From the NCBI GenBank assembly GCA_965644295.1, contig CBFFRP010000201.1, forward strand, positions 1 to 64,000: a DNA stretch of 64,000 nt. The letters run 5' to 3'. This DNA is from Paraphysomonas bandaiensis (lineage: Eukaryota; Protista; Chrysophyceae). Made by a program: the position numbers and the translations under genes. The notes under the pieces were generated by a model that was not told the DNA's origin, made no database searches, and worked only from the letters and a program-made list of their open reading frames with translations. Position 1 is the first letter of the stretch, and every line of letters starts with the position of its first letter. Of this stretch, positions 2,773-16,367 are shown one piece after another.

Positions 2773-3648
2773 TGAGACACCAACGTCTCTGATTCGATCT
2801 CAGACAACCCAAATGCCAAGCCTATATCCCGGATTTGATCCTCACTGGCATTGGCAATGGAAGGGTCTAACCCTCCAAGCATAAGCCTGAGGGTCCTTCT
2901 CACTGACTCGAATTTAGTAGACTCTTGTGCGCTATCAAGAGTCTCCTCCTCCATAATAATAACAATATAATCAAATCACAATGAACAAATATATGTCTAC
3001 AACTACAATGCTATCTACCAGCAATTTCAAGAGTAAGGAAATTGCATCTTATTATCAATAATATAAATATGTCTACCTACGATTCCGTGATCAATGGAAT
3101 GAACATCATTCATATTCAATACCAAACACATCAGTCTAACACAGTTGATCATAATAACTCATCACAACTGTATAAGGGAAGATACATTCAGTATTCTCTT
3201 TGTAGTTGAAGCCTGGTATTCGTACTCCTTAGTACAATCAATCCCCAATAAGCACTGAAGGAAATACGTAATGTATAACTGTATTACTGGATAATCTGGC
3301 AATACACATCTATCAGCGTGGATATCAAACCCGGAATTCTCCAGTAAACTTCTCCAGCCTTAAAGTCAATATATATATATAATAAGAACATATATATATA
3401 TCATCCATCATCAGTATCATCATTATGTCTCATTATTGATAATCATGTCTCTCTTTGTCTTTTGAATGATTATGTAAATATCAATAATAAGCATGAATTG
3501 TCATAGTCATAATACATCATATATCTCAGTGTGAGTTATGGTAATAATAATAATATTCAATCTATGTTTGCACAGATAGTATGTACAAACTTAAGCATAT
3601 ACAATAGAGAGCTTGTAGAATAGAATAACCTGATAGCTGGTTATTACA
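2773..3648 (-). repeat. 3' LTR (876 bp)
   Basis: Matches 12174-13049. Minus strand begins TGTAATAACC and ends GTGTCTCA. Contains a copy of the first 60 gag codons (ORF 2769-2954). Confidence 0.97.
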
Positions 3649-3660
3649 CTACCCCCTCCA
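3649..3660 (-). other. Polypurine tract (plus-strand primer)
   Basis: Minus strand TGGAGGGGGTAG lies immediately before the 3' LTR TG. Confidence 0.85.
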
Positions 3661-3703
3661 GCAGTCGCATACGCCAGTATGCGGAACGAAGTTCACTGCG
3701 AAC

Positions 3704-6700
3704 CTAAAATGGCTTCATATTAGTAGCATTTATTCGAACCTCTTTTCCTTCAATTTCAGCATCATAAAGTATTGGACTTAGTCGCCGAATAACTTTATAA
3801 GGTCCTTCAAATCTAGCTTGTAATTTGGCATTGATTTTATACAATTCCTCATCATCAGCCGATTTAAACACATTAATTGGACGTCGAATTCTGAAGAATA
3901 AGTCACCAGCATTATATTCTTTGAACTCTCGAGGTCGCCTAGATACTATATTATGTCGAAGATGATTCTTTTGAGCCTTCTTCGTTGCATAATTCCAAGC
4001 TTGTTCCAAAGAAATCAACAATTTATCTATCCATTCAGCTTCAATAGTTCCAGGTTGTAATCGAAGCTCGGAAAGTTTCGAGGACAATGTAAACTCTATA
4101 GATGGTAAACGGCATTCTCTACCGAACATCATATAATATGGAGTAAAACTTGTGCTCGAGGACACTGTAGTATTATACATCAATTGTACTGTAGGCAAAA
4201 ATGTATCCCAGTCATCCTGTAATACACCTACAAAATGGTACAACTGATCCTTCAACGTCTTGTTGTGATTCTCAACTAAACCCTGGCTCCTTGGAGTATA
4301 AGGAGTAGTGTTAATCCTTCTATACTTGAATAACTTGGATATTGCTTTGGTCAGTTTATTGACAAACTCTGTGCCTTTATCACTCACCAGTAATTCTGGT
4401 AACCCAAATGGACAAAACACATGAGTAATCAAAGCATTAGCCACTTCCAAAGGCGTCTTGTTCTTAAGAGGCATAAGCCAAACAAATTTAGTAAGGAAAT
4501 CCTTTACCACTAGAATATAACTGAAACCACTTTTGGTTTTCACCAATCTTCCTGTTAAATCAATATGTATTCGTGACAAAGGAAATTTTGCATCAGGGTA
4601 TTTCATTATTGGAATCTTTGGTCGCGTTTGATAGGTCTTACGTAATTTACAAGGTATACATTCCTCCACATGTTTCTGTACATCCTTGCGTATTGACGGC
4701 CAAAAATATCTCAATTTCAAAGTTTCAAGCATTCGTTGTGTTCCTGGATGCGTATATCCTTCATGGAAATACTTCATTAGTTGAAAACGTAACACCTGAG
4801 GGACCATAATTTGCCAATCTATTGATCCCTTGTTTTTCTGAACATGTTTTCTCAATAGTGTCTTGTGCGATGGTTCATCTGCATTCTCATGTAACTTGTA
4901 AACATGACCATCCACTTCTAACTCATGGCCAGTTTCAAAATTTGATAACTGTGATATAATCAATCCAAGTTGAGTATCATTTTCTTGGATCTGAAACATA
5001 CTCTCTCTACTCGAAGGCCACTTAATCTCCGGATCTTCTTCCGGATGATCTAATAAATATTGATCTGATAACTCCCATAATCCAGATTTTCCACATACGG
5101 CGAATGGGTGAGTATCATATCTATCCAATTTCCCTGACAAAGGCCTCCTATGACCAACCACTAACTTATGCATTTCATCATAATGTATTGAAGCAATCTC
5201 ATATTTTTGGAAATTATCGTCATCAATATACTTTCTGCCTACCAGATATTGCAATTCGTCAGCAAGTGATTGGCATTGTACTAGGTTCTCATAAGAGTAC
5301 TTCTCCAAAGCGTCGGTTTCTAGATATCGGAGAGTTCTCTCGAAATTCCTAGTATTTCGTTCCTCCATCTCAACAAGTTCCTGTATTCTGGAATTTTCTT
5401 CATCGCTGTACTTAAAGATTTTGGAATATAGTTTCTCCTGAACTTTCCGTTTTTGATCGTACACAATTAACTCAAATTCATCTTTAAAAGACACGGTAGT
5501 CTTCCGTCGAGATCCATCTAAATTCAGAATTTGATTATCTTCTGGACTAAGTTGATCACTTCTAGTACTCCAAAATTCTTTACCATAGTCAAAAAATATT
5601 TCATCCCCAGGCAAGATCTCTCTAAGAGCCATCAAAACTCCTTTAGATTTTTTCCATATCAATTTCGCATTAATCAATTGTTTGGATATCCCATCATTCG
5701 CATATCGACCTAAGCTTGAACCAGGTTCCCATCCATCAATAACAATCTTACGATGTGCTCCAGCAATCATCTGCATCCCATAATTGGAGCTTAATTGATC
5801 CACTCCTTCAGATACAACCGGACCCACATAATCACAAATCTCAACATTTGGACAGATCTGTTTGGTGGCAAAAAGTCCCCATCCTGCTCTTAGCTTTGTC
5901 GATGGAAGAATAGTACATTGATTGTAACCAGAAATTCGTCGTTCTCGAATTAACTTCATATCTTCTGACTCATCTGGATTATCCATATAGTTTGTTCGAG
6001 ATGGATGAAAGCTAGTTCGGTTCGTGTGTGCAGTTGCATGTTGTATATTCTGTCCCGAATTGCTGAATTTCATCCTTGACTCACCAGTTTCCTGAACTTC
6101 CGTGATATTCAATTCTTTAAGTAGATTCTCGACTTGGCAACTATATTGTTCTACATCGATACAAAGCTGCTTCCTTCTTTTTAATGTAGAGCCAGCAACT
6201 TTAAATCTAACTGCAGAATTTTCTAATTCTGAACTTTCCCCTAATACTCCCCCTTCCTTGACATCAGGCAAAGAAGACAACAAATCCAAATCCAGCGCAT
6301 CACAATTACAGATTTGAACCTCAAATTTGCTAGAGCAAGTATGAGTTTTCTTAATAGTTTGCGCCTCCACAACCGCTTGGCGTTTCAATTTACTCAACTG
6401 TCGTTTTGCAGCCCCCCATGATCGGATGAGGTCTGGATCCTCATTATCAACCACCGGCCCGAGATGATCGGAGAGCTCCTCCCTAGTAGCTGGCGGTACA
6501 TCCCCTATTTGCCAAAGGCGACTTAACATATCAGCAACTACATTTTCCACCCCTTTTTTGTAATGTAAAGCAAAACGATATGATTGAAGATCCATGAGGT
6601 ATCCCAGCAATCGTGGATTAAGTGTTGCAGTCACTGAATGGACCATATATTTCAGGCAATTGTGGTCAGAGTGGACTTCAAATTTACGACCACTACTCAG

Positions 6701-8284
6701 ATAAATATGCCAATGGAGAATAACATCCCTGAGGGCCTTACATTCCAAATCCGTGGCCGAGTAATTTCGTTCAGCAGGAGTTAACTTACGACTGAAATAT
6801 TCCACCGGATGGAGCTGCCCTGCGTCATCATGCTGCATGAGAACCCCACCGATACCACGCTTTGTCTTGGAAGCATCCAGGTGAATGACAAACGGTTTAG
6901 AATTATCAATGTAACGAAGCACAGGAGCCTTCCGCAGCGCCTCTTTAAGCCTCTCCATGGCATGGCCGTGTATCTCTGGGCGCCAGAGTTTCTTCACGTT
7001 GACATTTTTCTTCGTCAAGTCATACAGAGGCAACGCAACGTCTGCGTATTGAGGAATATACTGACGATAGAATGAAGTACTTCCTAAAAAACATCGAACA
7101 GCCGTAACGTCCTCTGGGTCTGCAAGATTTGTAATCGCCTCAACCTTCTTCGGATCAGGGCATCGGCCGTTTCTGGACAGAATATGTCCAAGGAACCGCA
7201 GCTCCCGATAATTAATATGAGTCTTTTCAATTTTAAATGTAAGATGACGATTTCGAAGTCTATCGTATATGGACTGCTGTGTCAGGAAATGTGCACGAAA
7301 ACCCCCAGTATGGTTAAGCACATCGTCCAGGTATGCAGAGACTTGAAACCGATCCATGTCTTCAAAAGTCTGGGCAATGACTCTACTAAAGTGTGAAGGT
7401 GCATTGACCCAGCCTTGTAACATCACCGTATACTGTAAATGAGCGTTATGAGTGCGGAATGCCGTTTTAAATCGACTATCAGCGTCAAGCTCCACACAGA
7501 AAAATGCATCAGCAATATCGCCCGCTGAAAACCGGTCAGTTCCCACAGGAATGCTATCTAGCAAGTCATCAATCCTGGGAAGTGGAAAAATATCTACCTT
7601 AGTTTTCTGATTGAGCGATCGGACATCTGAACACATCCGAAAAAATGTGGCCACTTCAGGCCAGTTAACCTTTTTGAAGATTTCTAAATGTGCCGTGTCT
7701 CCCCATTTATCTAAAAATTTCTGAATACGGTCATGATAAGGAACCAGAACTAAACCATGGCTCCAATCACTGTTTGAGGGTTGAAGCTTTTTCTGACGAA
7801 GCATCATACCAGTTTTAGCCTCTAAAAATGCTTGTTGCAATAAAGAATATTTCCGAGGTCGCGCCCGAACCGGAACTTCATCAGTAGTTTCAATACTCAC
7901 TTTATAATCCTTAATCCGTGGAGGGTTATCGGGATCAGGAAAACAGAAAACATCAATATTGGCCAAAGCTTGAGCCAAAAAATAATCACGTTCATTATGA
8001 TGTGAAGCTATAGTATCCGCGTCGATAGAAATCTCCCCTTGCAACGAGACTGCTTCATCATCCTTATATATATCCAGCTTAGTTAAAATCAGTTCAATAC
8101 ACTCTTGAAGACGGTCAGGAGTGTACTTGTCAAATCGTGGTTGAACTGAATTTCGCTGACACAAATCCACTAAATTCCATAATTCCACAGGGAATGACTC
8201 CGGTCGTGGACAATCCGAAGTCGTATCGGCTATGTTAACAGGCGGTGGCTCCGGAGGTGGCCGATTCACCTCTTTGCCGTCAAC
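3704..8284 (-). CDS. pol: Pol: reverse transcriptase, RNase H, SET domain, integrase
   Basis: RT: RMCSDVRSLN, FPLPRIDD, YLDD at 7322-7333, FLGH. RNase H: HLDAS, ERNYSATDLE, SDH, NVVADMLSR. SET at 5570-5917. Integrase: HEGYTH...CIPC, IHIDL, SDKG, GLVEN, GPY. The frame is open from 8284, directly after the gag stop; the track start (8269) is a GTG. Confidence 0.95.
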   Translation of the reverse strand, partial: VDGKEVNRPPPEPPPVNIADTTSDCPRPESFPVELWNLVDLCQRNSVQPRFDKYTPDRLQECIELILTKLDIYKDDEAVSLQGEISIDADTIASHHNERDYFLAQALANIDVFCFPDPDNPPRIKDYKVSIETTDEVPVRARPRKYSLLQQAFLEAKTGMMLRQKKLQPSNSDWSHGLVLVPYHDRIQKFLDKWGDTAHLEIFKKVNWPEVATFFRMCSDVRSLNQKTKVDIFPLPRIDDLLDSIPVGTDRFSAGDIADAFFCVELDADSRFKTAFRTHNAHLQYTVMLQGWVNAPSHFSRVIAQTFEDMDRFQVSAYLDDVLNHTGGFRAHFLTQQSIYDRLRNRHLTFKIEKTHINYRELRFLGHILSRNGRCPDPKKVEAITNLADPEDVTAVRCFLGSTSFYRQYIPQYADVALPLYDLTKKNVNVKKLWRPEIHGHAMERLKEALRKAPVLRYIDNSKPFVIHLDASKTKRGIGGVLMQHDDAGQLHPVEYFSRKLTPAERNYSATDLECKALRDVILHWHIYLSSGRKFEVHSDHNCLKYMVHSVTATLNPRLLGYLMDLQSYRFALHYKKGVENVVADMLSRLWQIGDVPPATREELSDHLGPVVDNEDPDLIRSWGAAKRQLSKLKRQAVVEAQTIKKTHTCSSKFEVQICNCDALDLDLLSSLPDVKEGGVLGESSELENSAVRFKVAGSTLKRRKQLCIDVEQYSCQVENLLKELNITEVQETGESRMKFSNSGQNIQHATAHTNRTSFHPSRTNYMDNPDESEDMKLIRERRISGYNQCTILPSTKLRAGWGLFATKQICPNVEICDYVGPVVSEGVDQLSSNYGMQMIAGAHRKIVIDGWEPGSSLGRYANDGISKQLINAKLIWKKSKGVLMALREILPGDEIFFDYGKEFWSTRSDQLSPEDNQILNLDGSRRKTTVSFKDEFELIVYDQKRKVQEKLYSKIFKYSDEENSRIQELVEMEERNTRNFERTLRYLETDALEKYSYENLVQCQSLADELQYLVGRKYIDDDNFQKYEIASIHYDEMHKLVVGHRRPLSGKLDRYDTHPFAVCGKSGLWELSDQYLLDHPEEDPEIKWPSSRESMFQIQENDTQLGLIISQLSNFETGHELEVDGHVYKLHENADEPSHKTLLRKHVQKNKGSIDWQIMVPQVLRFQLMKYFHEGYTHPGTQRMLETLKLRYFWPSIRKDVQKHVEECIPCKLRKTYQTRPKIPIMKYPDAKFPLSRIHIDLTGRLVKTKSGFSYILVVKDFLTKFVWLMPLKNKTPLEVANALITHVFCPFGLPELLVSDKGTEFVNKLTKAISKLFKYRRINTTPYTPRSQGLVENHNKTLKDQLYHFVGVLQDDWDTFLPTVQLMYNTTVSSSTSFTPYYMMFGRECRLPSIEFTLSSKLSELRLQPGTIEAEWIDKLLISLEQAWNYATKKAQKNHLRHNIVSRRPREFKEYNAGDLFFRIRRPINVFKSADDEELYKINAKLQARFEGPYKVIRRLSPILYDAEIEGKEVRINATNMKPF
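5570..5917 (-). other. SET domain within Pol
   Basis: AGWGLFATKQI...EICDYVG...IDG...SLGRYAND...NA...ALREILPGDEIFFDYGKEFW matches SET motifs I (GxG), II (YxG), III (RxxNH, here RYAND) and IV (ELxF/YDY). Confidence 0.9.
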
Positions 8285-11200
8285 TCATTTCGATGAGGAC
8301 ACCAGCCTAGTGACATTTTCGTGATTCTCTTCAGATAACATAGAAATATCTGAATGCTGGAATTTGTCATCAGTAGGCATGATAGTGGTATCCTCCGTCT
8401 CGACACTGCCTTTCATAGCAGATTCCACCGTCTCCTGATTATGAACCTGCATCCCCAATAATATGGGTTGAAGTCGTACAACTAAACGCGGTCTACCCGG
8501 TAGATGGATCCAATCATCGGTATGATTAGAAGCCCATATATAAGGTCTGTTCGCCGTACAAATAGCATCTTCAAATTGTAAGACGGGCTCATTAGCATCA
8601 TCACCTGAATTAATCCTTGCAACCTCTGGCTGAGTCTGTATCCATCCACCTAACGGAGCACCCTTGCCCACTTGAACAGGAATCCGCATCTTAGAATGCG
8701 GTGGGATATGTTTCGATATGCAGACTGCAGCCTTGTGAGGTTGAGGTTTGTTTTCACGGAGATGGCGTGCAACACATTTCTGTACCACAGGGTCCTGAGC
8801 TGATGCCATTTGCGTAACAGTCTCATTCCAGTTGAATTGAGGCATTGCATACTGAATACCATTAGTTTGGAACAACAGCAGTTTATGATCAAACAAGTCA
8901 ATCATTTTGATACGTCGTAATGCATGCCCTCCAAAGATTACATTCATGGAACAATTCGGGATAATTGGTATCCATGCTTTCAACTGAACTTGTTCTTTTG
9001 CATTGTTCAAAAGTGGTGCCTCTCCCGGCAACACTGCCACAGGTAAGACCCGTTGTGCAGTAACAGTGTAGGTAAGACAAGCTCTCCAACTCACAGCGAT
9101 ATCCTGTGAACCTATTCCCCGAATAATGTACCGGTCTCTCTTTGGGATTCGTACTCGCTTAAGATTCAAGAGGGCTGCACACTCTTCGTCGATCAAGGAC
9201 TCCATAGAGCCATGATCCACCTGGTGCCAACCGACTCTCTGTACTGGTTTACCAGTTTCATCAACTGTATCATATAGAACACGAAACATGGATAATGTAT
9301 CTTGAGATTCATCCCTAGGTGTCACAGTGTGCACTAAGTATCGAACTTTTTGTGCAGCATGAACCTTTCGTTTGGGTTTTGATTTTGACTTAGTAGATCG
9401 TGAACCGGAAAGTGAGTCTGTACTGTGAGCAGGTATAGAGTCATCCAGTGTAGAGAAAGAAGAGTCATCATCACTATCCGCCCAATGTACTTGTGGTGTA
9501 CTAGAAACACTTGATGCTATGGAATTGGATTTCTTCCGTTCGCCACCAATGAATGTCGTATGCAAAGCACTCCCTCCATCCCACCGGCTAGTCAAATCCC
9601 GAAATGCTGCCTGAAATTCCTCCTTCTGAGCCGTAGGCAACTGAGACCAAGGTTGGCTATACTTATTCAATCTGGACAACCAAAAATTGTATATTCGATT
9701 CCTTTCAATGTTACGTGGTGTCTCAGACACAAATCCAAGTGGGTCAAATTTCCCATTCGTGATGCGTCGGCATTGAGCGTTGTTAATACTATGTCGAAGG
9801 CCACATCGTGAACATGTAAGCTTCGCAATCTCAATCGGTGTGAGAGATGGTTTGGGTTCCTCGCGTATGCCGGCATGAACTTTGTGATGTCGTCGTAAGC
9901 CTCCCTCACCCTTAGTTGTGTCTGGTTGTTTACTAGATTGGACATCAGGACGTATAATGTATAGCAGCGTTCCCTGCTGGAATTCTTCCTGAATCTCTCG
10001 CCAGATTGATTCTACCTCCTCCCATGATAGACTCCAATTTTCAGTCGACTTCGCCCTTTCAATTTTTGTGATCTTATTGTCGTACGCTGCAACCAACGAT
10101 TTACCCCAAACAGGCTCTTTTCCTACCACTCGGCGCATAGATTCTTCCATCACCTGTGCCGTCTGGCGATCCGGCGTATTATGTTCAACTACCTCTTTTA
10201 GTTCATAATATAGTTGCATAACTGCTGTAGGCGTAGCGAGATCAGGAGCAGCCCAGTCCTCAATCTGTTTGGCACGCTGTTCATTGGTCTGTACGGGACA
10301 ATAATTACGGATAGCCCAATGGCAGAAATGCACCCAACGACGCATCCAAAATTCATATTCAGTGGCTAATTGGCTATCCTCCTGGTCATCCCATATCTCT
10401 GGCACACGATTCAAAGACAACCGTTGCAGTTCCTCTTTAAAGCCGCCCTTAAAACACCAACCATTCTTTGTCTGTATGACCAAATCTTTCAGCCCCATCT
10501 TGGCCTGACGTGCCTTCTGGACAGCAAAACGGAGTCCTCTTTCAATGGGGTATCGATTAGAATGATCTTTCTCTAGACGCATCTTGTCATCAGTCTTCAT
10601 GTAGAGAGTAGGCTCCTTGACTTCTCTTCTCCATGGAGTAGCTTTGGGCAATGCTTTAGACATTAACCGCATGGCTCTAGACGATCGCATTTGGTTACAG
10701 AGCAGTGACCAGTGTTGCTCTCCAATTTGTTGAAGGTGACACCCGAATGCTTGTGCGTCTAGCAGTCTGCCATCTTCAGTTGGATAAATACGGGAATTCG
10801 ATCTTGAACCCCTAGAACTCAACACTCGGGATGTACTTGATCTGGTATCCGCTGACCGACTTCCTCTGCTGACAAAGGAACCCCGACTACCATTGCTGAC
10901 GAAGGAGTGGTATGACTCATCGTCAGAGTCAACGGTCCTCTCTTCCCAAGATCCAAATTTTTTATTTTGCTGACTGAGTTGTTTGCTGAGGAGGTTGCAG
11001 CGCATCATTAGTTGGCTATCGGCCTCCTCCCACATAGTTTCAGCCATGTCTCTTATATCAAGGTATTGGTTCAGCACCATACACAATTCCGCTGTTTCGT
11101 AAATGTGCTCTTCAGCCACTAACTCATGTACATTGTCAAGAACTGTCAGCCTACTTAACCACTCGCGAACATTTGATGGTAATTGCAAGCCGTTTCCTCG

Positions 11201-12355
11201 ATTTAAGACTAGTTGGGCAAGCTGAGAAATATCTTCCGCAGAACTCTCTCTTGCTATTTTCATTTGCTCAAAAAAGTGGTCCTGTAAACGATCAGTGACC
11301 TCAGTAGCTGTACAAGCCATGTAAATCTGCTGCTCCCAATGCTGCAGTGGCTCTGCTATATGAGCGGTGTATCGCTGTCTTGACCATCTGGTGGTATGTA
11401 CCCTCCGTCGATCTGCGTACTGTTGCAGGATGTTAAGAGAAATCTTTAGGTCCATAGGGTCTCTAGCCCCACGATCCAGGTACAAATGCTCCATATATGT
11501 GTCCTCGTTTAGGTCTGGCCGAGGACGCAATCTTCTATGGCCCAATATTATGCACTTCTCTAATGTGTCTGTGGTGGGTCTCTTTGATCTGAGTATCCCC
11601 CTTCTTACTCGGCATCGATAACATAGACCACCCTGAATTTCCATTGAATTTACCTGGTCCTTACAATCGATACATTGATTTTCCGAGCAATAATAACATA
11701 TTCCTCCTGCGGTGAGACGCTTGGGATCTGTGAGTCGCTGACAGATTTGACACCTATCCGCATCTCTACCTAGTTGGTCTGGTCTGCTGGTGTTATATAC
11801 ACCTTGCAATCCAGAGGTGGAATGTAGCACATTGTGTGCCTCATCCCCTGCGTGAGGTAAGGGTGTATAATGACACTCCTTTGCCTCAGCCTCCTTGTTA
11901 CTTTGTTCCTTGAATGGCAAGGGGTCCATATGCAATGGACTATCTCCTGTCGCATCTGCATCAAACGAACAAAAATCATCCTGAGCCCTCAATGGTTGAA
12001 TAGCGTCCTTACCGAATGCGAGAGGTTTTCGGGCTGACAAGGGTACCTCCTCCGGACTACTAAGACGATCCACCAGTTCTGGAACAGTCGTTGCTTGACT
12101 GTCTGCTTCATGAGTTTCTGTCTCTCTAAAGTCGTCACTTTGTTTATTGAGAGATGAAATTTCCTTAAAAAATTGAGACACCAACGTCTCTGATTCGATC
12201 TCAGACAACCCAAATGCCAAGCCTATATCCCGGATTTGATCCTCACTGGCATTGGCAATGGAAGGGTCTAACCCTCCAAGCATAAGCCTGAGGGTCCTTC
12301 TCACTGACTCGAATTTAGTAGACTCTTGTGCGCTATCAAGAGTCTCCTCCTCCAT
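8285..12355 (-). CDS. gag: Gag plus aspartic protease (1356 aa)
   Basis: Lies upstream of pol. CxxC pairs at 11612-11752. Knuckle CSRCGLRHSINNAQC at 9770-9814. Protease-like VDHGSMESLID...IRGIG...VIFGGHAL at about 8918-9235. Confidence 0.85.
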   Translation of the reverse strand: MEEETLDSAQESTKFESVRRTLRLMLGGLDPSIANASEDQIRDIGLAFGLSEIESETLVSQFFKEISSLNKQSDDFRETETHEADSQATTVPELVDRLSSPEEVPLSARKPLAFGKDAIQPLRAQDDFCSFDADATGDSPLHMDPLPFKEQSNKEAEAKECHYTPLPHAGDEAHNVLHSTSGLQGVYNTSRPDQLGRDADRCQICQRLTDPKRLTAGGICYYCSENQCIDCKDQVNSMEIQGGLCYRCRVRRGILRSKRPTTDTLEKCIILGHRRLRPRPDLNEDTYMEHLYLDRGARDPMDLKISLNILQQYADRRRVHTTRWSRQRYTAHIAEPLQHWEQQIYMACTATEVTDRLQDHFFEQMKIARESSAEDISQLAQLVLNRGNGLQLPSNVREWLSRLTVLDNVHELVAEEHIYETAELCMVLNQYLDIRDMAETMWEEADSQLMMRCNLLSKQLSQQNKKFGSWEERTVDSDDESYHSFVSNGSRGSFVSRGSRSADTRSSTSRVLSSRGSRSNSRIYPTEDGRLLDAQAFGCHLQQIGEQHWSLLCNQMRSSRAMRLMSKALPKATPWRREVKEPTLYMKTDDKMRLEKDHSNRYPIERGLRFAVQKARQAKMGLKDLVIQTKNGWCFKGGFKEELQRLSLNRVPEIWDDQEDSQLATEYEFWMRRWVHFCHWAIRNYCPVQTNEQRAKQIEDWAAPDLATPTAVMQLYYELKEVVEHNTPDRQTAQVMEESMRRVVGKEPVWGKSLVAAYDNKITKIERAKSTENWSLSWEEVESIWREIQEEFQQGTLLYIIRPDVQSSKQPDTTKGEGGLRRHHKVHAGIREEPKPSLTPIEIAKLTCSRCGLRHSINNAQCRRITNGKFDPLGFVSETPRNIERNRIYNFWLSRLNKYSQPWSQLPTAQKEEFQAAFRDLTSRWDGGSALHTTFIGGERKKSNSIASSVSSTPQVHWADSDDDSSFSTLDDSIPAHSTDSLSGSRSTKSKSKPKRKVHAAQKVRYLVHTVTPRDESQDTLSMFRVLYDTVDETGKPVQRVGWHQVDHGSMESLIDEECAALLNLKRVRIPKRDRYIIRGIGSQDIAVSWRACLTYTVTAQRVLPVAVLPGEAPLLNNAKEQVQLKAWIPIIPNCSMNVIFGGHALRRIKMIDLFDHKLLLFQTNGIQYAMPQFNWNETVTQMASAQDPVVQKCVARHLRENKPQPHKAAVCISKHIPPHSKMRIPVQVGKGAPLGGWIQTQPEVARINSGDDANEPVLQFEDAICTANRPYIWASNHTDDWIHLPGRPRLVVRLQPILLGMQVHNQETVESAMKGSVETEDTTIMPTDDKFQHSDISMLSEENHENVTRLVSSSK

Positions 12356-13049
12356 AATAATAACAATATAATCAAATCACAATGAACAAATATATGTCTA
12401 CAACTACAATGCTATCTACCAGCAATTTCAAGAGTAAGGAAATTGCATCTTATTATCAATAATATAAATATGTCTACCTACGATTCCGTGATCAATGGAA
12501 TGAACATCATTCATATTCAATACCAAACACATCAGTCTAACACAGTTGATCATAATAACTCATCACAACTGTATAAGGGAAGATACATTCAGTATTCTCT
12601 TTGTAGTTGAAGCCTGGTATTCGTACTCCTTAGTACAATCAATCCCCAATAAGCACTGAAGGAAATACGTAATGTATAACTGTATTACTGGATAATCTGG
12701 CAATACACATCTATCAGCGTGGATATCAAACCCGGAATTCTCCAGTAAACTTCTCCAGCCTTAAAGTCAATATATATATATAATAAGAACATATATATAT
12801 ATCATCCATCATCAGTATCATCATTATGTCTCATTATTGATAATCATGTCTCTCTTTGTCTTTTGAATGATTATGTAAATATCAATAATAAGCATGAATT
12901 GTCATAGTCATAATACATCATATATCTCAGTGTGAGTTATGGTAATAATAATAATATTCAATCTATGTTTGCACAGATAGTATGTACAAACTTAAGCATA
13001 TACAATAGAGAGCTTGTAGAATAGAATAACCTGATAGCTGGTTATTACA
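12174..13049 (-). repeat. 5' LTR (876 bp)
   Basis: Direct repeat of 2773-3648, followed by the CTAG TSD. Includes a TA-rich tract (about 12770-12802) and the gag ATG (12355). Confidence 0.97.
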
Positions 13050-14205
13050 CTAGTACTCTAAGTGTTCCAACTCTTCGTCACTGTCGTCTTCATTCTTATA
13101 ATCGGACAGTCCATCATCGATGACCTGTGAGCCCACTGAAGTATACTGTCAAAGTAAGAAGAACAAACTGTTTCGTCGTCTGTTCACATGCATATTGTAC
13201 GTAATAAATATGAAAGAGATGATGGCCGAATAGTTTGGACCGTATACTGTACAGTGATAGTTTAGTGTAATAGTTTGGGTAGATATGGCGATCATTCTAC
13301 TGGCATCTTACTTTTATTCACTGTTTAGACTGGCTTGCTCTTACAGATTACAAGAAAAACATGTTTGTATGAGAATGACAGATGACAGCATCAATTTAAG
13401 CAGTTTGGAGTTTACTATTTGGTGAGTAGCTTGGCAGAGACAGACAGTACGATTTGAAATATTGAACATGAATTGTGTTCTTCGTTGCAGGTATGTATCA
13501 TAATTGTTCGATGTTTAAATAGTATACCAAATTGCAATATATTTCCATCGCCCCATGATAGTAGATAGAAGATGAGTTAGGTGATTATGAAGAGTAGTTT
13601 ATGATTAATCAAGTATATATTATAAGACACACTAGCATGAGCAATACATATCAATTATCAATATATTGCGAGGCCAGTTTTTTCTAAAATAATAATCAAT
13701 ATATTGTAGCAAGCAGGAATAAATAATTACAATATTTATATTGCAATCCAATATATTTCTGACTGCCCCTGATAATTGATGTTGCTTTGAAATTGGAAGT
13801 GTGTAAATGATTATTCTGTGATGAAATAAACCTAAATAATATTCCTCTTTATGCATTTATTAGATAATGATTTGGATGCAATTTCTACCGAGATTTTAAC
13901 TTTTCAATTTCGAGGAGTTCAACTATAATCAACACTCTAACCCTATTATTTTCAACCAATCTTAATGTATGAAGCAATCCGGACACAATCAAAACGCCTA
14001 TTTTTTTAGTCGCCACCACATAGCAGATACTAAACTTTCTAATCTCAAATTTTTGTATGGTCGCCGTTGTGGTCATTTTCAACTTTCCTTGTGTGAATAT
14101 TCACAGAGGTTGCAATACCACAATATCCCCAGGCACCCGATACAAAACTTCTGCAGCACGAGGAACATCCTATCGATAGGAGATACGCAAGCATAGACAC
14201 AAACG

Positions 14206-15474
14206 TCACTCCGTACATCCTGTAGCACATGCTGTACCTAGAGAACTTTCAAGTGAAAAGCAAGCCATGGTACAGGAAAGGTCAGCCTCAACAATACTGG
14301 ATGACACCGACGTGCGCACATAAATGCCAGCACGAGGAACCTGGATGCGACGAAGAGAGACCGGGGTTTCGATCAGAGTACTTAAGGCAGGCTCATCAGC
14401 GAACATAGTCAAAACAAAGCGCTTTGGTCTAAAGCAGTGTAGCACATTTCTCACGAGGGGGGTGTAACTTGGGAGACTAGCGTTGGTCTCAAAGGATGCG
14501 TAGGAGCATTGGGGCTCCGGGGTGACGTGGATAGTGGAGTACGCGTCATGTAGTATAGCATTCATGGAGTACCCACAGGGTGTGAAAGCGCACGCATCAA
14601 TCGTTGCACCAGGTACCAGCTGGTGAATTCCAGACATTAGCGTCATTTCTTTTCCTGTAATTGTGTCCCTACTTTTGTAAAAAATTGAAGCCACTGCTCT
14701 ATCCATGTCAAACATCATCATGTTAATGGTGATACCTTCCATGGAAGCGGGCAGTGGGAAACTGGGATTTTGTGAGTTTATATCGGGTCTTCTTGAAGAA
14801 ATGCCAGGTACGGACAGGGCCCCATGAGGACTAGGAAGATGATTCGTAGCAGTGCCGTGTGGAAGGTCCGCCACATATACAAACCAGTGATCATCGGTGA
14901 CAGGCCCAAGGATATGTCCAGATCCATTTAGACGGGCCTGCAGCTTCGAGTGAGAGTCCAGGAATTTTATCTCGTCACCGAAATTAGAATGTGGCCATTT
15001 CTGAGCACTGGGGTTATTAAGATTTTTCCGCGAGTATCCTACCCATCGAAGCTCCATGTTTAGGTCGTCGGCGTATTTCAACAGTGAATCTAAACAGTGA
15101 AGCAGTGTCGTGGTTCCACATGTCTTCATAATATAGCGATGCTTGTACACAAAGAGCGATGACTCAGATAAAACGTAAGCATCCACATAGCTACTTGATA
15201 TTTTACTTAGAATGCTACATTTAGCTTCCGTACATAGGAAATCAAGCTGCTGACGGGAAAGTGCGCGGAGGCCACGTTCGTGGCCGACGCCGGGTTGAAA
15301 GCACACCTCCATCGTCTTCTCCGGTCCCTCAAAGCACTCCTGGGAACTGTATTGGCCTTCAGAAGATACAATGATTTGACCCTCATCGTCCGAGCAAGAC
15401 GTAGCACACTCAGGGATTGGACTATATGTGCGATCATATATCTCAATTACATCATTTCTGTTAGTTATACTCAT
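14206..15474 (-). CDS. AMD1: S-adenosylmethionine decarboxylase proenzyme (eukaryotic type)
   Basis: FEGPEK, YVLSESSLFV (E-S autocleavage site), MKTCGTT, FTPCGYSMN, TIHVTPE...SYASFE. First ATG at 15474. The extreme 3' end may include another exon. Confidence 0.93.
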   Translation of the reverse strand: MSITNRNDVIEIYDRTYSPIPECATSCSDDEGQIIVSSEGQYSSQECFEGPEKTMEVCFQPGVGHERGLRALSRQQLDFLCTEAKCSILSKISSSYVDAYVLSESSLFVYKHRYIMKTCGTTTLLHCLDSLLKYADDLNMELRWVGYSRKNLNNPSAQKWPHSNFGDEIKFLDSHSKLQARLNGSGHILGPVTDDHWFVYVADLPHGTATNHLPSPHGALSVPGISSRRPDINSQNPSFPLPASMEGITINMMMFDMDRAVASIFYKSRDTITGKEMTLMSGIHQLVPGATIDACAFTPCGYSMNAILHDAYSTIHVTPEPQCSYASFETNASLPSYTPLVRNVLHCFRPKRFVLTMFADEPALSTLIETPVSLRRIQVPRAGIYVRTSVSSSIVEADLSCTMACFSLESSLGTACATGCTE

Positions 15475-16367
15475 TCGAGGGGATGCAACTCGCGTCTCTG
15501 TTAGAAATACCAGTAAACCCAAGTCGTTAGCCCAGCCAGTTGACCTGCAAGGCAAGAGAATACCGTTAGACAATGTTAAATGCAAACTTTGATGTGTATC
15601 TCACCTATACACAACAATCAATGGCTATTGCAAGCACTTCTTTTCAATCGATCGCTAGTAACCTAAAGCACAATATGCATCATCCCAATACAAAACAATT
15701 CATAAGCAACATCACAACTCACCGACAGTAAAAGAACTTCAGTATTTCAATGCATTCGTTGATTTACTATTGCACTTTAAGACATATGCACTTGGCAGTT
15801 GAATCCGGCGTTACTGATTGGATGGATGGGTCACGAGCTGTATACGGGGACCGTATCTTCAGTGGATACAATGTATTCAGTTCAATTGAGGGGTTTAGAG
15901 CCATAGAATACATATAGAAATACGTACGTGTGTATGTAGATAGAAGGTGTAAACGTACCTGTCGATAGAGTACTATTATACAGTAACGTACACACCACAT
16001 CATGTGCGCGTACCTACAGAGTATGTACAATCTAGACGTACAACTCATAAATACCGTATATGGTACGCCATATACATACATACTCCACAAGTACATACCT
16101 CACATACATCCATCCTATAGGCATTCCGCATCGTGCTGTACATACACACCACCATAAACCATACATACCTCATATACAGTACATACAGCAGTACATCCTA
16201 TTCCACTATACTGCAGTACATCCCCACCACCTCCCCATATATATGTGTATGGTATACGGTATACATGCATCGCATATGCACACCTCACTGTTGGTCATAA
16301 GAAACATTAACATAACATGCAATAACCACACCTCATAGCCTCCCCCTCTCATGACCGATACACCCTA

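Follow-up and report, generated by a model that had tools for sequence, protein, structure and literature searches.

Can a retrotransposon carry a protein-marking enzyme of its own, encoded in the same polyprotein as its integrase? This question is raised by a Ty3/Gypsy element of Paraphysomonas bandaiensis, found in the window, by which we mean the whole 64,000-nucleotide stretch of DNA that was analysed. From the letters alone, an initial annotation had described a full-length Gypsy element with matching LTRs and a target-site duplication and, inside its ~1.5-kaa Pol, an uninterrupted in-frame segment of ~115 aa with four SET motifs, located between RNase H and integrase and with no chromodomain after the GPY motif. 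All of these points were borne out by the analysis reported below.

Architecture of the element and its Pol

The element occupies 2773-13049 on the minus strand (10,277 bp). Its LTRs appear as exact 879-nt repeats (2773-3651 versus 12174-13052) and, trimmed to TG...CA, are 876 nt long and identical. The features of the element outside the interior of Pol are as follows.

2769-2772, no strand: target-site duplication CTAG on the 3' side of the element, preceding the TG of the LTR, with the same 4 nt beyond the other LTR
2773-3648, minus: 3' LTR, 876 nt, TG...CA, an exact repeat of 12174-13049
3649-3662, minus: polypurine tract adjoining the 3' LTR, minus strand ...GGAGGGGGTAG, read from the flanking sequence
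3704-8269, minus: ORF2, Pol, 1,521 aa (open frame 1,526 aa), from the ORF and Pfam, in the order RT, RNase H, linker, SET, spacer, module 2, integrase
8285-8287, minus: single TGA separating ORF1 and ORF2, with both sides in the same frame
8288-12355, minus: ORF1, an open reading frame of 1,356 aa, with a Gag-like and a protease-like region (the latter ORF1 aa ~1017-1210, 8726-9307)
12174-13049, minus: 5' LTR, 876 nt, which contains the first ATG of ORF1
13050-13053, no strand: target-site duplication CTAG on the 5' side, the same 4 nt as on the 3' side

Direct TG...CA LTRs flanked by a short target-site duplication are expected of the Metaviridae, and the Metaviridae order of PR, RT, RNase H and IN is likewise present: RVT_1, RT_RNaseH, Integrase_H2C2 and rve follow one another after the protease-like region of ORF1, and SET and module 2 are additions. 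ORF1 gave no match in the Pfam scan; its residues 1017-1197 align with the stretch upstream of RT in P0023, P0016 and P0153. The TGA between the two ORFs is retained in 11 of the 11 copies read. Directly beside the 3' LTR sits the polypurine tract GGAGGGGG, and inspection by eye of the sequence downstream of the 5' LTR revealed no TGG-type primer-binding site. An AdoMetDC gene neighbours the element; none of its relatives exceeds 68% identity, and the named matches, a Mallomonas transcript and a record labelled Symbiodinium microadriaticum, stand at 64-65%.

Six copies in the genome are full-length, and no two of them share the same 4-bp target duplication; the 1,526-aa Pol frame is intact in at least seven copies, and three copies are 100% identical across 3.5 kb. 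A full-length relative with LTRs 99.8% identical resides on an unrelated 301-kb contig, and two further, diverged subfamilies in the genome show the identical domain order. The element is thus a young, transposition-competent Ty3/Gypsy LTR retrotransposon, consisting of a Gag-PR ORF, one in-frame UGA and then Pol. Within Pol, the following regions were delineated.

7178-7642, minus: reverse transcriptase, Pol aa 210-364 (RVT_1 PF00078, E 1.4e-18)
6578-6970, minus: RNase H, Pol aa 434-564 (PF17917 and PF17919, E about 1e-27)
5900-6439, minus: variable linker 1, Pol aa 611-790 (identity 0.08-0.18 to four relatives; low pLDDT in the part modelled)
5513-5965, minus: SET domain and the helices that flank it on the N and C sides, Pol aa 769-919, the Pfam core being aa 796-896 or 5582-5884 (Pfam PF00856, AF2 model, fold matches, conserved motif residues)
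5360-5512, minus: variable spacer, Pol aa 920-970 (identity 0.11-0.14 to relatives; 0.21 amino-acid identity between subfamilies)
5000-5359, minus: module 2, a conserved domain of ~120 aa, Pol aa 971-1090 (kept in every relative, with a mean column identity of 56%; pLDDT 75-90)
4292-4804, minus: integrase, comprising the Integrase_H2C2 zinc domain (aa 1156-1212) and the catalytic core rve (aa 1230-1326), both from Pfam
3707-3841, minus: C-terminal SH3-like/GPY-F region of integrase and end of Pol (weak SH3_Tf2-1 and Integrase_p58_C matches)

The Pfam matches therefore come in the order RT, RNase H, SET, Integrase_H2C2 and rve. The GPY/F motif is contained in the SH3-like match (aa 1477-1503), and Pol terminates 18 aa beyond that match. 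The same scan found no match anywhere in Pol to Chromo (PF00385), the domain by which chromoviruses are recognised. As for module 2, searches returned neither a Pfam nor a PDB sequence match, a language-model atlas gave nothing beyond noise, and the sole structural match, a CAP-Gly domain at Z 5.5, falls under the noise level of the tool. A long predicted helix (model residues 207-242) starts near the C-terminal end of the variable spacer and extends into module 2.

Sequence and fold of the SET domain

The reverse strand of 5570-5917 encodes 116 aa with no stops, in which GWGLFA, DYVG, RYAND and EIFFDYGKEFW are read in turn; the plus strand of the same interval is full of stops and was rejected, which assigns the feature to the minus strand. 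A Pfam profile search and a structure prediction had been suggested as checks on the SET call, and both supported it. Thus, PF00856 matches the whole Pol at E 3.5e-7 and 31.0 bits, over the cut-off of 22.4, and matches the segment scanned alone at E 2.4e-8 and 34.8 bits. The SETs of the family-2 elements in the same genome reach E 1.7e-13 (51.4 bits), which, together with the SET fold of the predicted model, places the match beyond chance. The AF2 model has a pLDDT of 88.3 and a pTM of 0.82. With this model, Foldseek returned PRDM9 (4c1q) on top (TM 0.60), as well as SETD8 and G9a, at E about 1e-8 and TM about 0.6, and VIA-align gave Z values of about 10 to SET structures. Against PDB sequences, the SET profile matched G9a at E 7e-14, with an identity of only 20-22%. 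Since G9a, EZH2, Set2, SETD8, MLL and PRDM9 match comparably in sequence and fold, these comparisons do not discriminate between substrates.

The motifs that form the SAM pocket and the catalytic site are present (G796/G798, Y814/G816 and E890...Y895). No Pre-SET match was obtained with Pfam, and the flanks of the domain are helices devoid of the Cys clusters that make up the zinc-binding elements of SUV39/G9a. With no post-SET zinc cluster, the conserved C-flanking helix would have to close the lysine channel. The domain is a minimal SET that lacks pre- and post-SET zinc clusters, belongs to an 'N/Q-D' subtype and is nearest to the cores of G9a, SETD8 and PRDM9.

This subtype bears on whether the domain works at all. 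The initial annotation had pointed to a change from NH to ND in motif III and had regarded catalysis as uncertain on that account. The change is real (N858-D859, with the canonical N-H dipeptide of RFINHSCxPN absent); the doubt drawn from it is largely removed. Asp occupies this position in 139 of the 148 closest SET relatives and in all 61 related Pols, so that ND is the signature of a SET subfamily and not the decay of one copy. In 36 of these 61 Pols the preceding Asn is replaced by Gln, for which we know of no characterised SET. Throughout 113 members of the subfamily the SET motif residues are invariant or nearly so. Other SETs of the N-D type adjoin PRMT5 and DOT1 histone-methyltransferase domains. 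The idea that the subfamily is specific to transposons was rejected: a retroelement domain was found in one of 40 other long members, the rest being combined with kinase, UCH, TPR, DOT1 and other domains. A LINE-like element of the same genome also bears an N-D type SET.

Alternatively, the domain could be an inactive pseudo-enzyme that binds a chromatin protein, such as a histone tail, and thereby tethers the pre-integration complex to particular chromatin. It would then stand in for a chromodomain, possibly in concert with module 2. The ND or QD in place of the canonical NH would fit such a role, as would the closeness of SET to integrase in an element that has no chromodomain and still needs to choose its target. 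In addition, the family-2 SETs exceed the cut-off of the PR/SET profile PF21549 (31.5 and 30.4 bits versus 27; the SET at 5570-5917 gives no match), and many PR/SET domains have no known activity. However, mere binding does not call for the residues that are kept across the 61 Pols, namely GxG (60-61), YxG (61), the Glu and Tyr of motif IV (61) and the Trp (61), besides the Asp of motif III (61). Moreover, the ND signature is common to more than 130 diverse SET proteins, some of them fused to PRMT5 or DOT1, which favours a subfamily of working enzymes. We thus consider a pseudo-enzyme unlikely and prefer an active methyltransferase.

Lineage distribution and constraint

Relatives were sought by ordering public proteins, clustered at 90% identity, according to the similarity of their RT-RNase H region. 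A word-based protein search limited to the SET region gave one near-identical protein; the relatives emerged through exhaustive profile searches and searches anchored on RT-RH. Of the 68 public clusters at or above 50% RT-RH identity, 63 contain SET, and the remaining five end before the SET position; SET is thus found in 63 of the 63 relatives that are sufficiently complete. By contrast, it is found in none of the 52 public clusters with an RT-RH identity below 44%, to which the RT relatives with Chromo (PF00385) belong. In the SET tree, 13 of 13 Gypsy SETs fall into a single clade (SH-aLRT 98). The lineage abounds in ocean metagenomes, where at least 63 protein clusters represent it, and the SET-bearing Pol was found independently in assemblies from ENA, JGI and Logan. 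Contigs of poly(A) metatranscriptomes from the sea reach integrase and module 2 only, and the runs that cover SET are presumed to be RNA. A search for further elements with the order RT, RNase H, SET and integrase, which the initial annotation had proposed, has uncovered many copies, several subfamilies and a wide public lineage defined by its RT. This is a diverse Gypsy lineage whose Pol always carries two inserts, SET and module 2, between RNase H and integrase.

The two inserts are also set apart by their conservation. Identity to four relatives is 0.42-0.47 for SET and 0.35-0.47 for module 2, comparable to that of RT-RH, as opposed to the 0.08-0.18 of the linkers. Between subfamilies, dN/dS is about 0.18 for SET and about 0.10 for integrase, and the copy-level values range from 0.18 to 0.43. 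Among the near-identical family-1 copies, SET alone has 0-2 changes, which leaves its dN/dS underpowered, and a SET value of 0.66 for the pair C463 and C476 was discarded as an artefact of frameshifts in the C463 copy at a contig end. SET and module 2 are conserved islands amid variable linkers, and both are under purifying selection.

These data decide a further question, namely whether SET is a passenger: a fragment of a host gene that was captured once and is now neutral or decaying, as the dN/dS analysis suggested at the outset was meant to detect, or a chimera of the assembly. Loss by single copies would agree with this, given that one family-2 copy has frameshifts within SET and that the SET region is missing from one degraded relative. 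It is nevertheless refuted by the copy, lineage, conservation and assembly data, and we give it next to no credence. Six independent insertions have intact frames, and no sufficiently complete relative at or above 50% RT-RH identity lacks the domain; its conservation far exceeds that of the flanking linkers, with a constrained dN/dS and invariant motif residues; and the same arrangement recurs in assemblies of independent origin.

Proposed function and known systems

On the basis of sequence and the predicted model, we think it probable that SET is an active SAM-dependent lysine methyltransferase, which is carried along with the integration machinery and marks a chromatin protein near the new insertion. 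As SET is common to the whole lineage, the elements probably bring a protein- or chromatin-marking enzyme of their own. SET would be produced within Gag-Pol and, being part of it, would end up inside the particle. Cleavage by the protease at putative sites in the variable linkers would then release it, by itself or joined to module 2 and integrase, and the freed SET would enter the nucleus together with the integration machinery. There, its target would be a lysine of a chromatin protein, most probably of a histone tail in nucleosomes at the fresh insertion or close to it, and the methylation would set the local chromatin state of the element. The initial annotation had likewise suggested that a SET released next to integrase, or fused with it, could mark chromatin at the insertion, for anti-silencing or target marking.

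The substrate might, however, be a non-histone protein, either one of the element's own products (Gag, RT or integrase) or a protein of the host, such as one that acts in restriction or silencing, with replication as the beneficiary. Many SET enzymes act on non-histone proteins, including SETD6, SET7/9 and SMYD, and the fold matches include SETD6 (Z 9.8), SET7/9 (Z 9.9) and SMYD3 (Z 10.4). As a member of Gag-Pol, SET would also sit in the particle next to the element's proteins. On the other hand, the top matches in sequence and fold are histone enzymes (G9a, EZH2, SETD8 and PRDM9), and a site directly upstream of integrase suits an action on chromatin. Neither point is decisive, and we rate a non-histone substrate as rather improbable.

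Returning to methylation of chromatin, a bolder version may be put forward tentatively, which we think somewhat doubtful as a whole. In this version, the entire lineage would possess its own writer of histone marks: arriving together with integrase, possibly under the guidance of module 2, SET would methylate nucleosomes at each insertion, providing an escape from silencing or a safe harbour instead of just reading host marks, and the capture of SET would be a strategy to which retroelements of marine protists turn repeatedly. Because the copy at 2773-13049 is intact and young, its function can be tested directly with recombinant protein.

Retrotransposons read host chromatin through chromodomains and through tethering to host factors, and a few have captured DNA methyltransferases. 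If our proposal is true, the present element would be a retrotransposon with its own writer of histone or protein marks inside Pol, beside integrase. A literature search found no paper on an element of the RT-RNaseH-SET-integrase type, and one survey lists SET-transposon fusions generically. Such an element would offer a compact natural system for how mobile elements shape chromatin at their landing sites, of relevance to how genome parasites of little-studied marine protists oppose silencing or turn it to their own use.

Several known systems can be compared. First, retrotransposons with captured cytosine DNA methyltransferases were reportedly described by de Mendoza and colleagues in 2018, in a study that the survey 10.1101/2021.11.30.470311 cites, and others with a captured methyl-CpG-binding domain, reportedly by the same group in 2019. 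The former resemble the present lineage in being LTR elements of protists or algae that keep an epigenetic writer-type domain across a lineage; they differ in that their enzyme methylates DNA, whereas the fold here is that of a protein lysine methyltransferase. Second, vSET of Paramecium bursaria chlorella virus 1 is a minimal SET encoded by the virus and methylates H3K27 of the host. By analogy, both are minimal SETs borne by a mobile or parasitic entity of a protist, although vSET is a free-standing viral protein; it is not among the best 60 PDB sequence matches to our domain, and no kinship is claimed. Third, G9a/EHMT2, SETD8 and PRDM9 share the SET fold, GxG, YxG and E-x-x-x-x-Y-G, and the 'YG..(F/Y)W' end is G9a-like. 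Unlike them, the present domain lacks pre- and post-SET zinc clusters, has N/Q-D for N-H, is only 20-22% identical and lies within a retrotransposon polyprotein.

Fourth, SET methyltransferases are among the chromatin genes reported as fused to transposon domains, including SETMAR, by Grau-Bove et al. 2022 (10.1101/2021.11.30.470311). Each of these fusions is a single gene model of several exons, partially supported by expression, and they are not characterised as elements; the RT-RNaseH-SET-integrase arrangement does not appear in the text or table examined. SETMAR itself is a gene of the host, joined to a DNA transposase, and not a domain of a mobile element. Finally, the chromoviruses (e.g. 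MAGGY) are Ty3/Gypsy elements whose Pol likewise has a lineage-wide, chromatin-related accessory domain by integrase, with a presumed link between integration and chromatin. Their chromodomain, however, reads methyl-lysine and follows the GPY/F end of integrase, whereas here a writer-type SET fold precedes integrase.

Anatomy and mobility of the element

The SET segment proposed in the initial annotation at 5570-5917 was borne out at those coordinates. It is encoded on the minus strand, where it reads without interruption as 116 aa carrying GWGLFA, DYVG, RYAND and EIFFDYGKEFW; a plus-strand reading was ruled out, with stops throughout. The Pfam SET profile recognises it within Pol at E 3.5e-7 (31 bits vs a cut-off of 22.4) and, when the segment is scanned alone, at E 2.4e-8. 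A weak SH3-like match was found at the end of Pol, and the Pfam scan gave no chromodomain match in Pol, as had been noted earlier.

Features of the element and Pfam domains of its Pol
2773-3648 and 12174-13049: LTRs, 876 nt each
8285-12355, minus strand: ORF1, 1,356 aa
8285-8287, minus strand: single in-frame TGA between ORF1 (Gag-PR) and ORF2 (Pol), codon context AAA TGA GTT/GTA GAC
3704-8269, minus strand: ORF2, holding the SET segment, 1,521 aa
Pol aa 210-364: RVT_1
Pol aa 434-564: RNase H
Pol aa 796-896: SET (PF00856)
Pol aa 1156-1212: Integrase_H2C2
Pol aa 1230-1326: rve

The matching LTRs and target-site duplication of the earlier description were also recovered. The 10,277-bp element has LTRs that are exact repeats (876 nt when read as TG...CA), a purine tract adjoining the 3' LTR, and a CTAG duplication on both flanks. 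ORF1 has its first ATG within the 5' LTR, 182 nt inside (12174-12355); some 60 of its N-terminal codons therefore belong to the LTR and occur again in the 3' LTR. ORF1 has no Pfam match; its aa 1017-1197 align to the part of related polyproteins that precedes RT, and we read them as a putative protease region. ORF1 and ORF2 share one frame and the intervening TGA is present in 11 of 11 copies read, which suggests that Gag-Pol is produced by programmed stop-codon read-through. In two diverged subfamilies of the same genome (family 2) and in metagenomic relatives, Gag-PR and Pol form one continuous ORF without the TGA.

In a search of the genome (62.5 Mb, 669 contigs), the SET segment was recovered nine times at 95-100% identity, and in seven of these copies the 1,526-aa frame around it is intact. 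Over 3.5 kb, three copies match the window exactly and others diverge from it by 0.4-0.7%. Both junctions were retrieved for five further full-length copies, which have the same termini as the window's element and each its own 4-bp duplication (CAAA, AGTC, AATA, TTTT and ATAT). With the CTAG copy, these are six independent integrase-type insertions, and because each carries a different duplication, an assembly chimera is excluded. These data show a genuine element that is mobile and young.

Elsewhere the window is densely packed with genes (ABC1 kinase, EF-hand protein, EML-like WD40 protein, DEAD helicase), so this copy inserted into gene-rich DNA. The host gene closest to it lies 1.15 kb from the 5' LTR and encodes an S-adenosylmethionine decarboxylase (14206-15585, minus strand; PF01536, E 2e-95), whose closest named relative, P0172 (65% identity), is filed under Symbiodinium microadriaticum. 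Left of the element, a tandem repeat of 42-nt period (1602-1761) sits in a stretch where GC content is higher, at about 50%.

As to expression, two poly(A) marine metatranscriptomes yielded contigs that match the region of the integrase and module 2, a conserved block 3' of SET, at 94-100% identity, most at 99-100%; none of these contigs matches SET. Two runs from the organism itself, presumed by guess to be RNA, cover all of Pol without joints.

Retention of active-site-type residues

A rival to an enzymatic role is that the SET would be a non-catalytic tethering domain, and the motif residues bear on this choice. Across 61 related Pols, 60 retain one glycine of GxG and 61 the other; both YxG residues (Tyr and Gly), the motif IV Glu and Tyr, and the Trp after them are present in all 61. 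The window copy has 17 of the 17 near-invariant residues of the wider SET subfamily. The initial annotation had taken the NH-to-ND change in motif III as a doubt on catalysis. This doubt is largely lifted: Asp occupies the position in 139 of the 148 SETs most closely related, all 61 Pols have it too, and it is a subfamily signature. The motif III Asn is replaced by Gln in 36 of 61 related Pols, all within a sub-lineage that also has an endonuclease-like domain.

An AlphaFold model of the SET (113-sequence alignment) reached pLDDT 88.3 and pTM 0.82. Its best Foldseek matches were PRDM9 (TM 0.60, rmsd 3.0), SETD8 and G9a, and in VIA-align, SMYD3, a Plasmodium SET, MLL1, SET8 and SET7/9 scored Z of about 10; in the sequence-profile comparison, G9a (E 7e-14) ranked first among solved relatives. 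No pre-SET or post-SET zinc clusters surround the window's SET, and a conserved C-flanking helix comes after its YG..FW end.

Because other members of this N-D subfamily adjoin PRMT5 and DOT1 domains and also occur in many contexts unrelated to transposons, the subfamily is cellular and chromatin-associated, with the Gypsy clade as one branch. A non-histone substrate is the rival to a chromatin target. Two giant metagenomic proteins, P0025 (2,700 aa) and P0035 (2,172 aa), combine N-D type SET and PRMT5 arginine methyltransferase domains, P0025 with DOT1 in addition, and are multi-writer histone-methyltransferase-like fusions. In the same genome, a LINE-like ORF of 2,795 aa (L028:1042-9426, contig C143, minus strand) holds SET (aa 874-978), Exo_endo_phos (1039-1276) and RVT_1 (1733-2025). 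Its SET is of N-D type (YINDPLD...INYGHEYW; 67.9 bits vs the Gypsy SET profile), so that a second class of retroelement in the genome has a SET of this subfamily.

Lineage-wide conservation of SET and module 2

The SET is not a one-off capture. Beyond the window's own family, both family-2 subfamilies (C476/C339/C661/C463 and C654/C75/C656; 43-46% RT-RH identity) have RT, RNase H, SET and integrase in this same sequence, and their SET scores exceed the window's (E 1.7e-13). All elements in the genome with at least 39% RT-RH identity have SET or a remnant, except one degraded copy on C297 that lost the region; among the many at 26% or less, no SET was found within 1.5 kb. Public proteins were ranked by how closely their RT-RH resembles the window's, and a custom SET profile was applied to them. 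SET occurs in 63 of the 68 clusters whose identity is at least 50% (110-270 bits; the remaining five end before the SET position) and in 0 of 52 below 44%, 41 of which are long enough to hold it. SET presence thus coincides with an RT-defined lineage. In a 113-SET tree, all 13 sequences with verified Gypsy context fall in one 24-row clade (SH-aLRT 98), whose other 11 rows are short proteins or lack recognisable context. One relative, on an unrelated 301-kb contig, is a full-length element with 608-nt LTRs 99.8% identical.

Between the putative protease region and RT, 46 of 61 related Pols carry Exo_endo_phos (PF03372, APE-type endonuclease/phosphatase fold; e.g. proteins P0016 and P0023, and L074:6206-9751), so that most metagenomic members have an endonuclease-like domain and integrase together; it is absent from the window's element. 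P0159 (NCBI CAE7285478.1), a fragment spanning SET and module 2 with at least 90% identity to the metagenomic protein P0002, is filed under Symbiodinium microadriaticum; it and P0172 may derive from that dinoflagellate or from a different organism in its culture.

Mean identity of the window's Pol to four relatives, in 30-aa bins
Pol aa 191-610, RT - RNase H: 0.4-0.6
Pol aa 611-790, linker 1: 0.08-0.18
Pol aa 791-910, SET: 0.42-0.47, dip to 0.23 at aa 821-850
Pol aa 911-970, spacer: 0.11-0.14
Pol aa 971-1090, module 2: 0.35-0.47
Pol aa 1091-1150, short variable stretch: about 0.2
Pol aa 1151-1390, integrase: 0.42-0.71

Between the two family-2 subfamilies, dN/dS is about 0.18 for SET and about 0.10 for integrase, and amino-acid identity of the spacer is only 21%; among copies of the window's element, dN/dS over 3.5 kb is 0.18-0.43. 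That SET is a neutral passenger is excluded.

Module 2 (about 120 aa) is present beside SET in every relative long enough. Its model is confident (pLDDT 75-90) and shows one helix, a sheet of three strands and additional helices. Pfam and PDB sequences gave no match, and fold comparison gave no convincing one; a role in targeting or as a reader would be speculative. A sub-lineage seen in L009 (contig C238) and the ENA contigs L029 and L030 has in common a TTG to TTTTA change inside module 2 (Pol aa 1043, window about 5141-5143), which shifts the frame and splits Pol into an RT-RH-SET ORF and an integrase ORF. As these three copies differ mutually at other positions, the change was passed on by transposition; we read the T run as a site where a -1 slip would bring Pol back into frame.

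Proposed action and known systems

In our proposed reading, the SET, synthesised as part of Gag-Pol, would be an active lysine methyltransferase that depends on SAM. It might be set free in the variable linkers or stay attached to integrase, and it would act on chromatin proteins at integration. Whereas chromoviruses have a reader domain after integrase, the window's element has SET between RNase H and integrase and no chromodomain. We found no description of an RT - RNase H - SET - integrase element in the literature. Besides chromoviruses, the concepts that come closest are retrotransposons with captured DNA methyltransferases and the SET-transposon fusion gene models of Grau-Bove et al. (10.1101/2021.11.30.470311), which are listed there generically.
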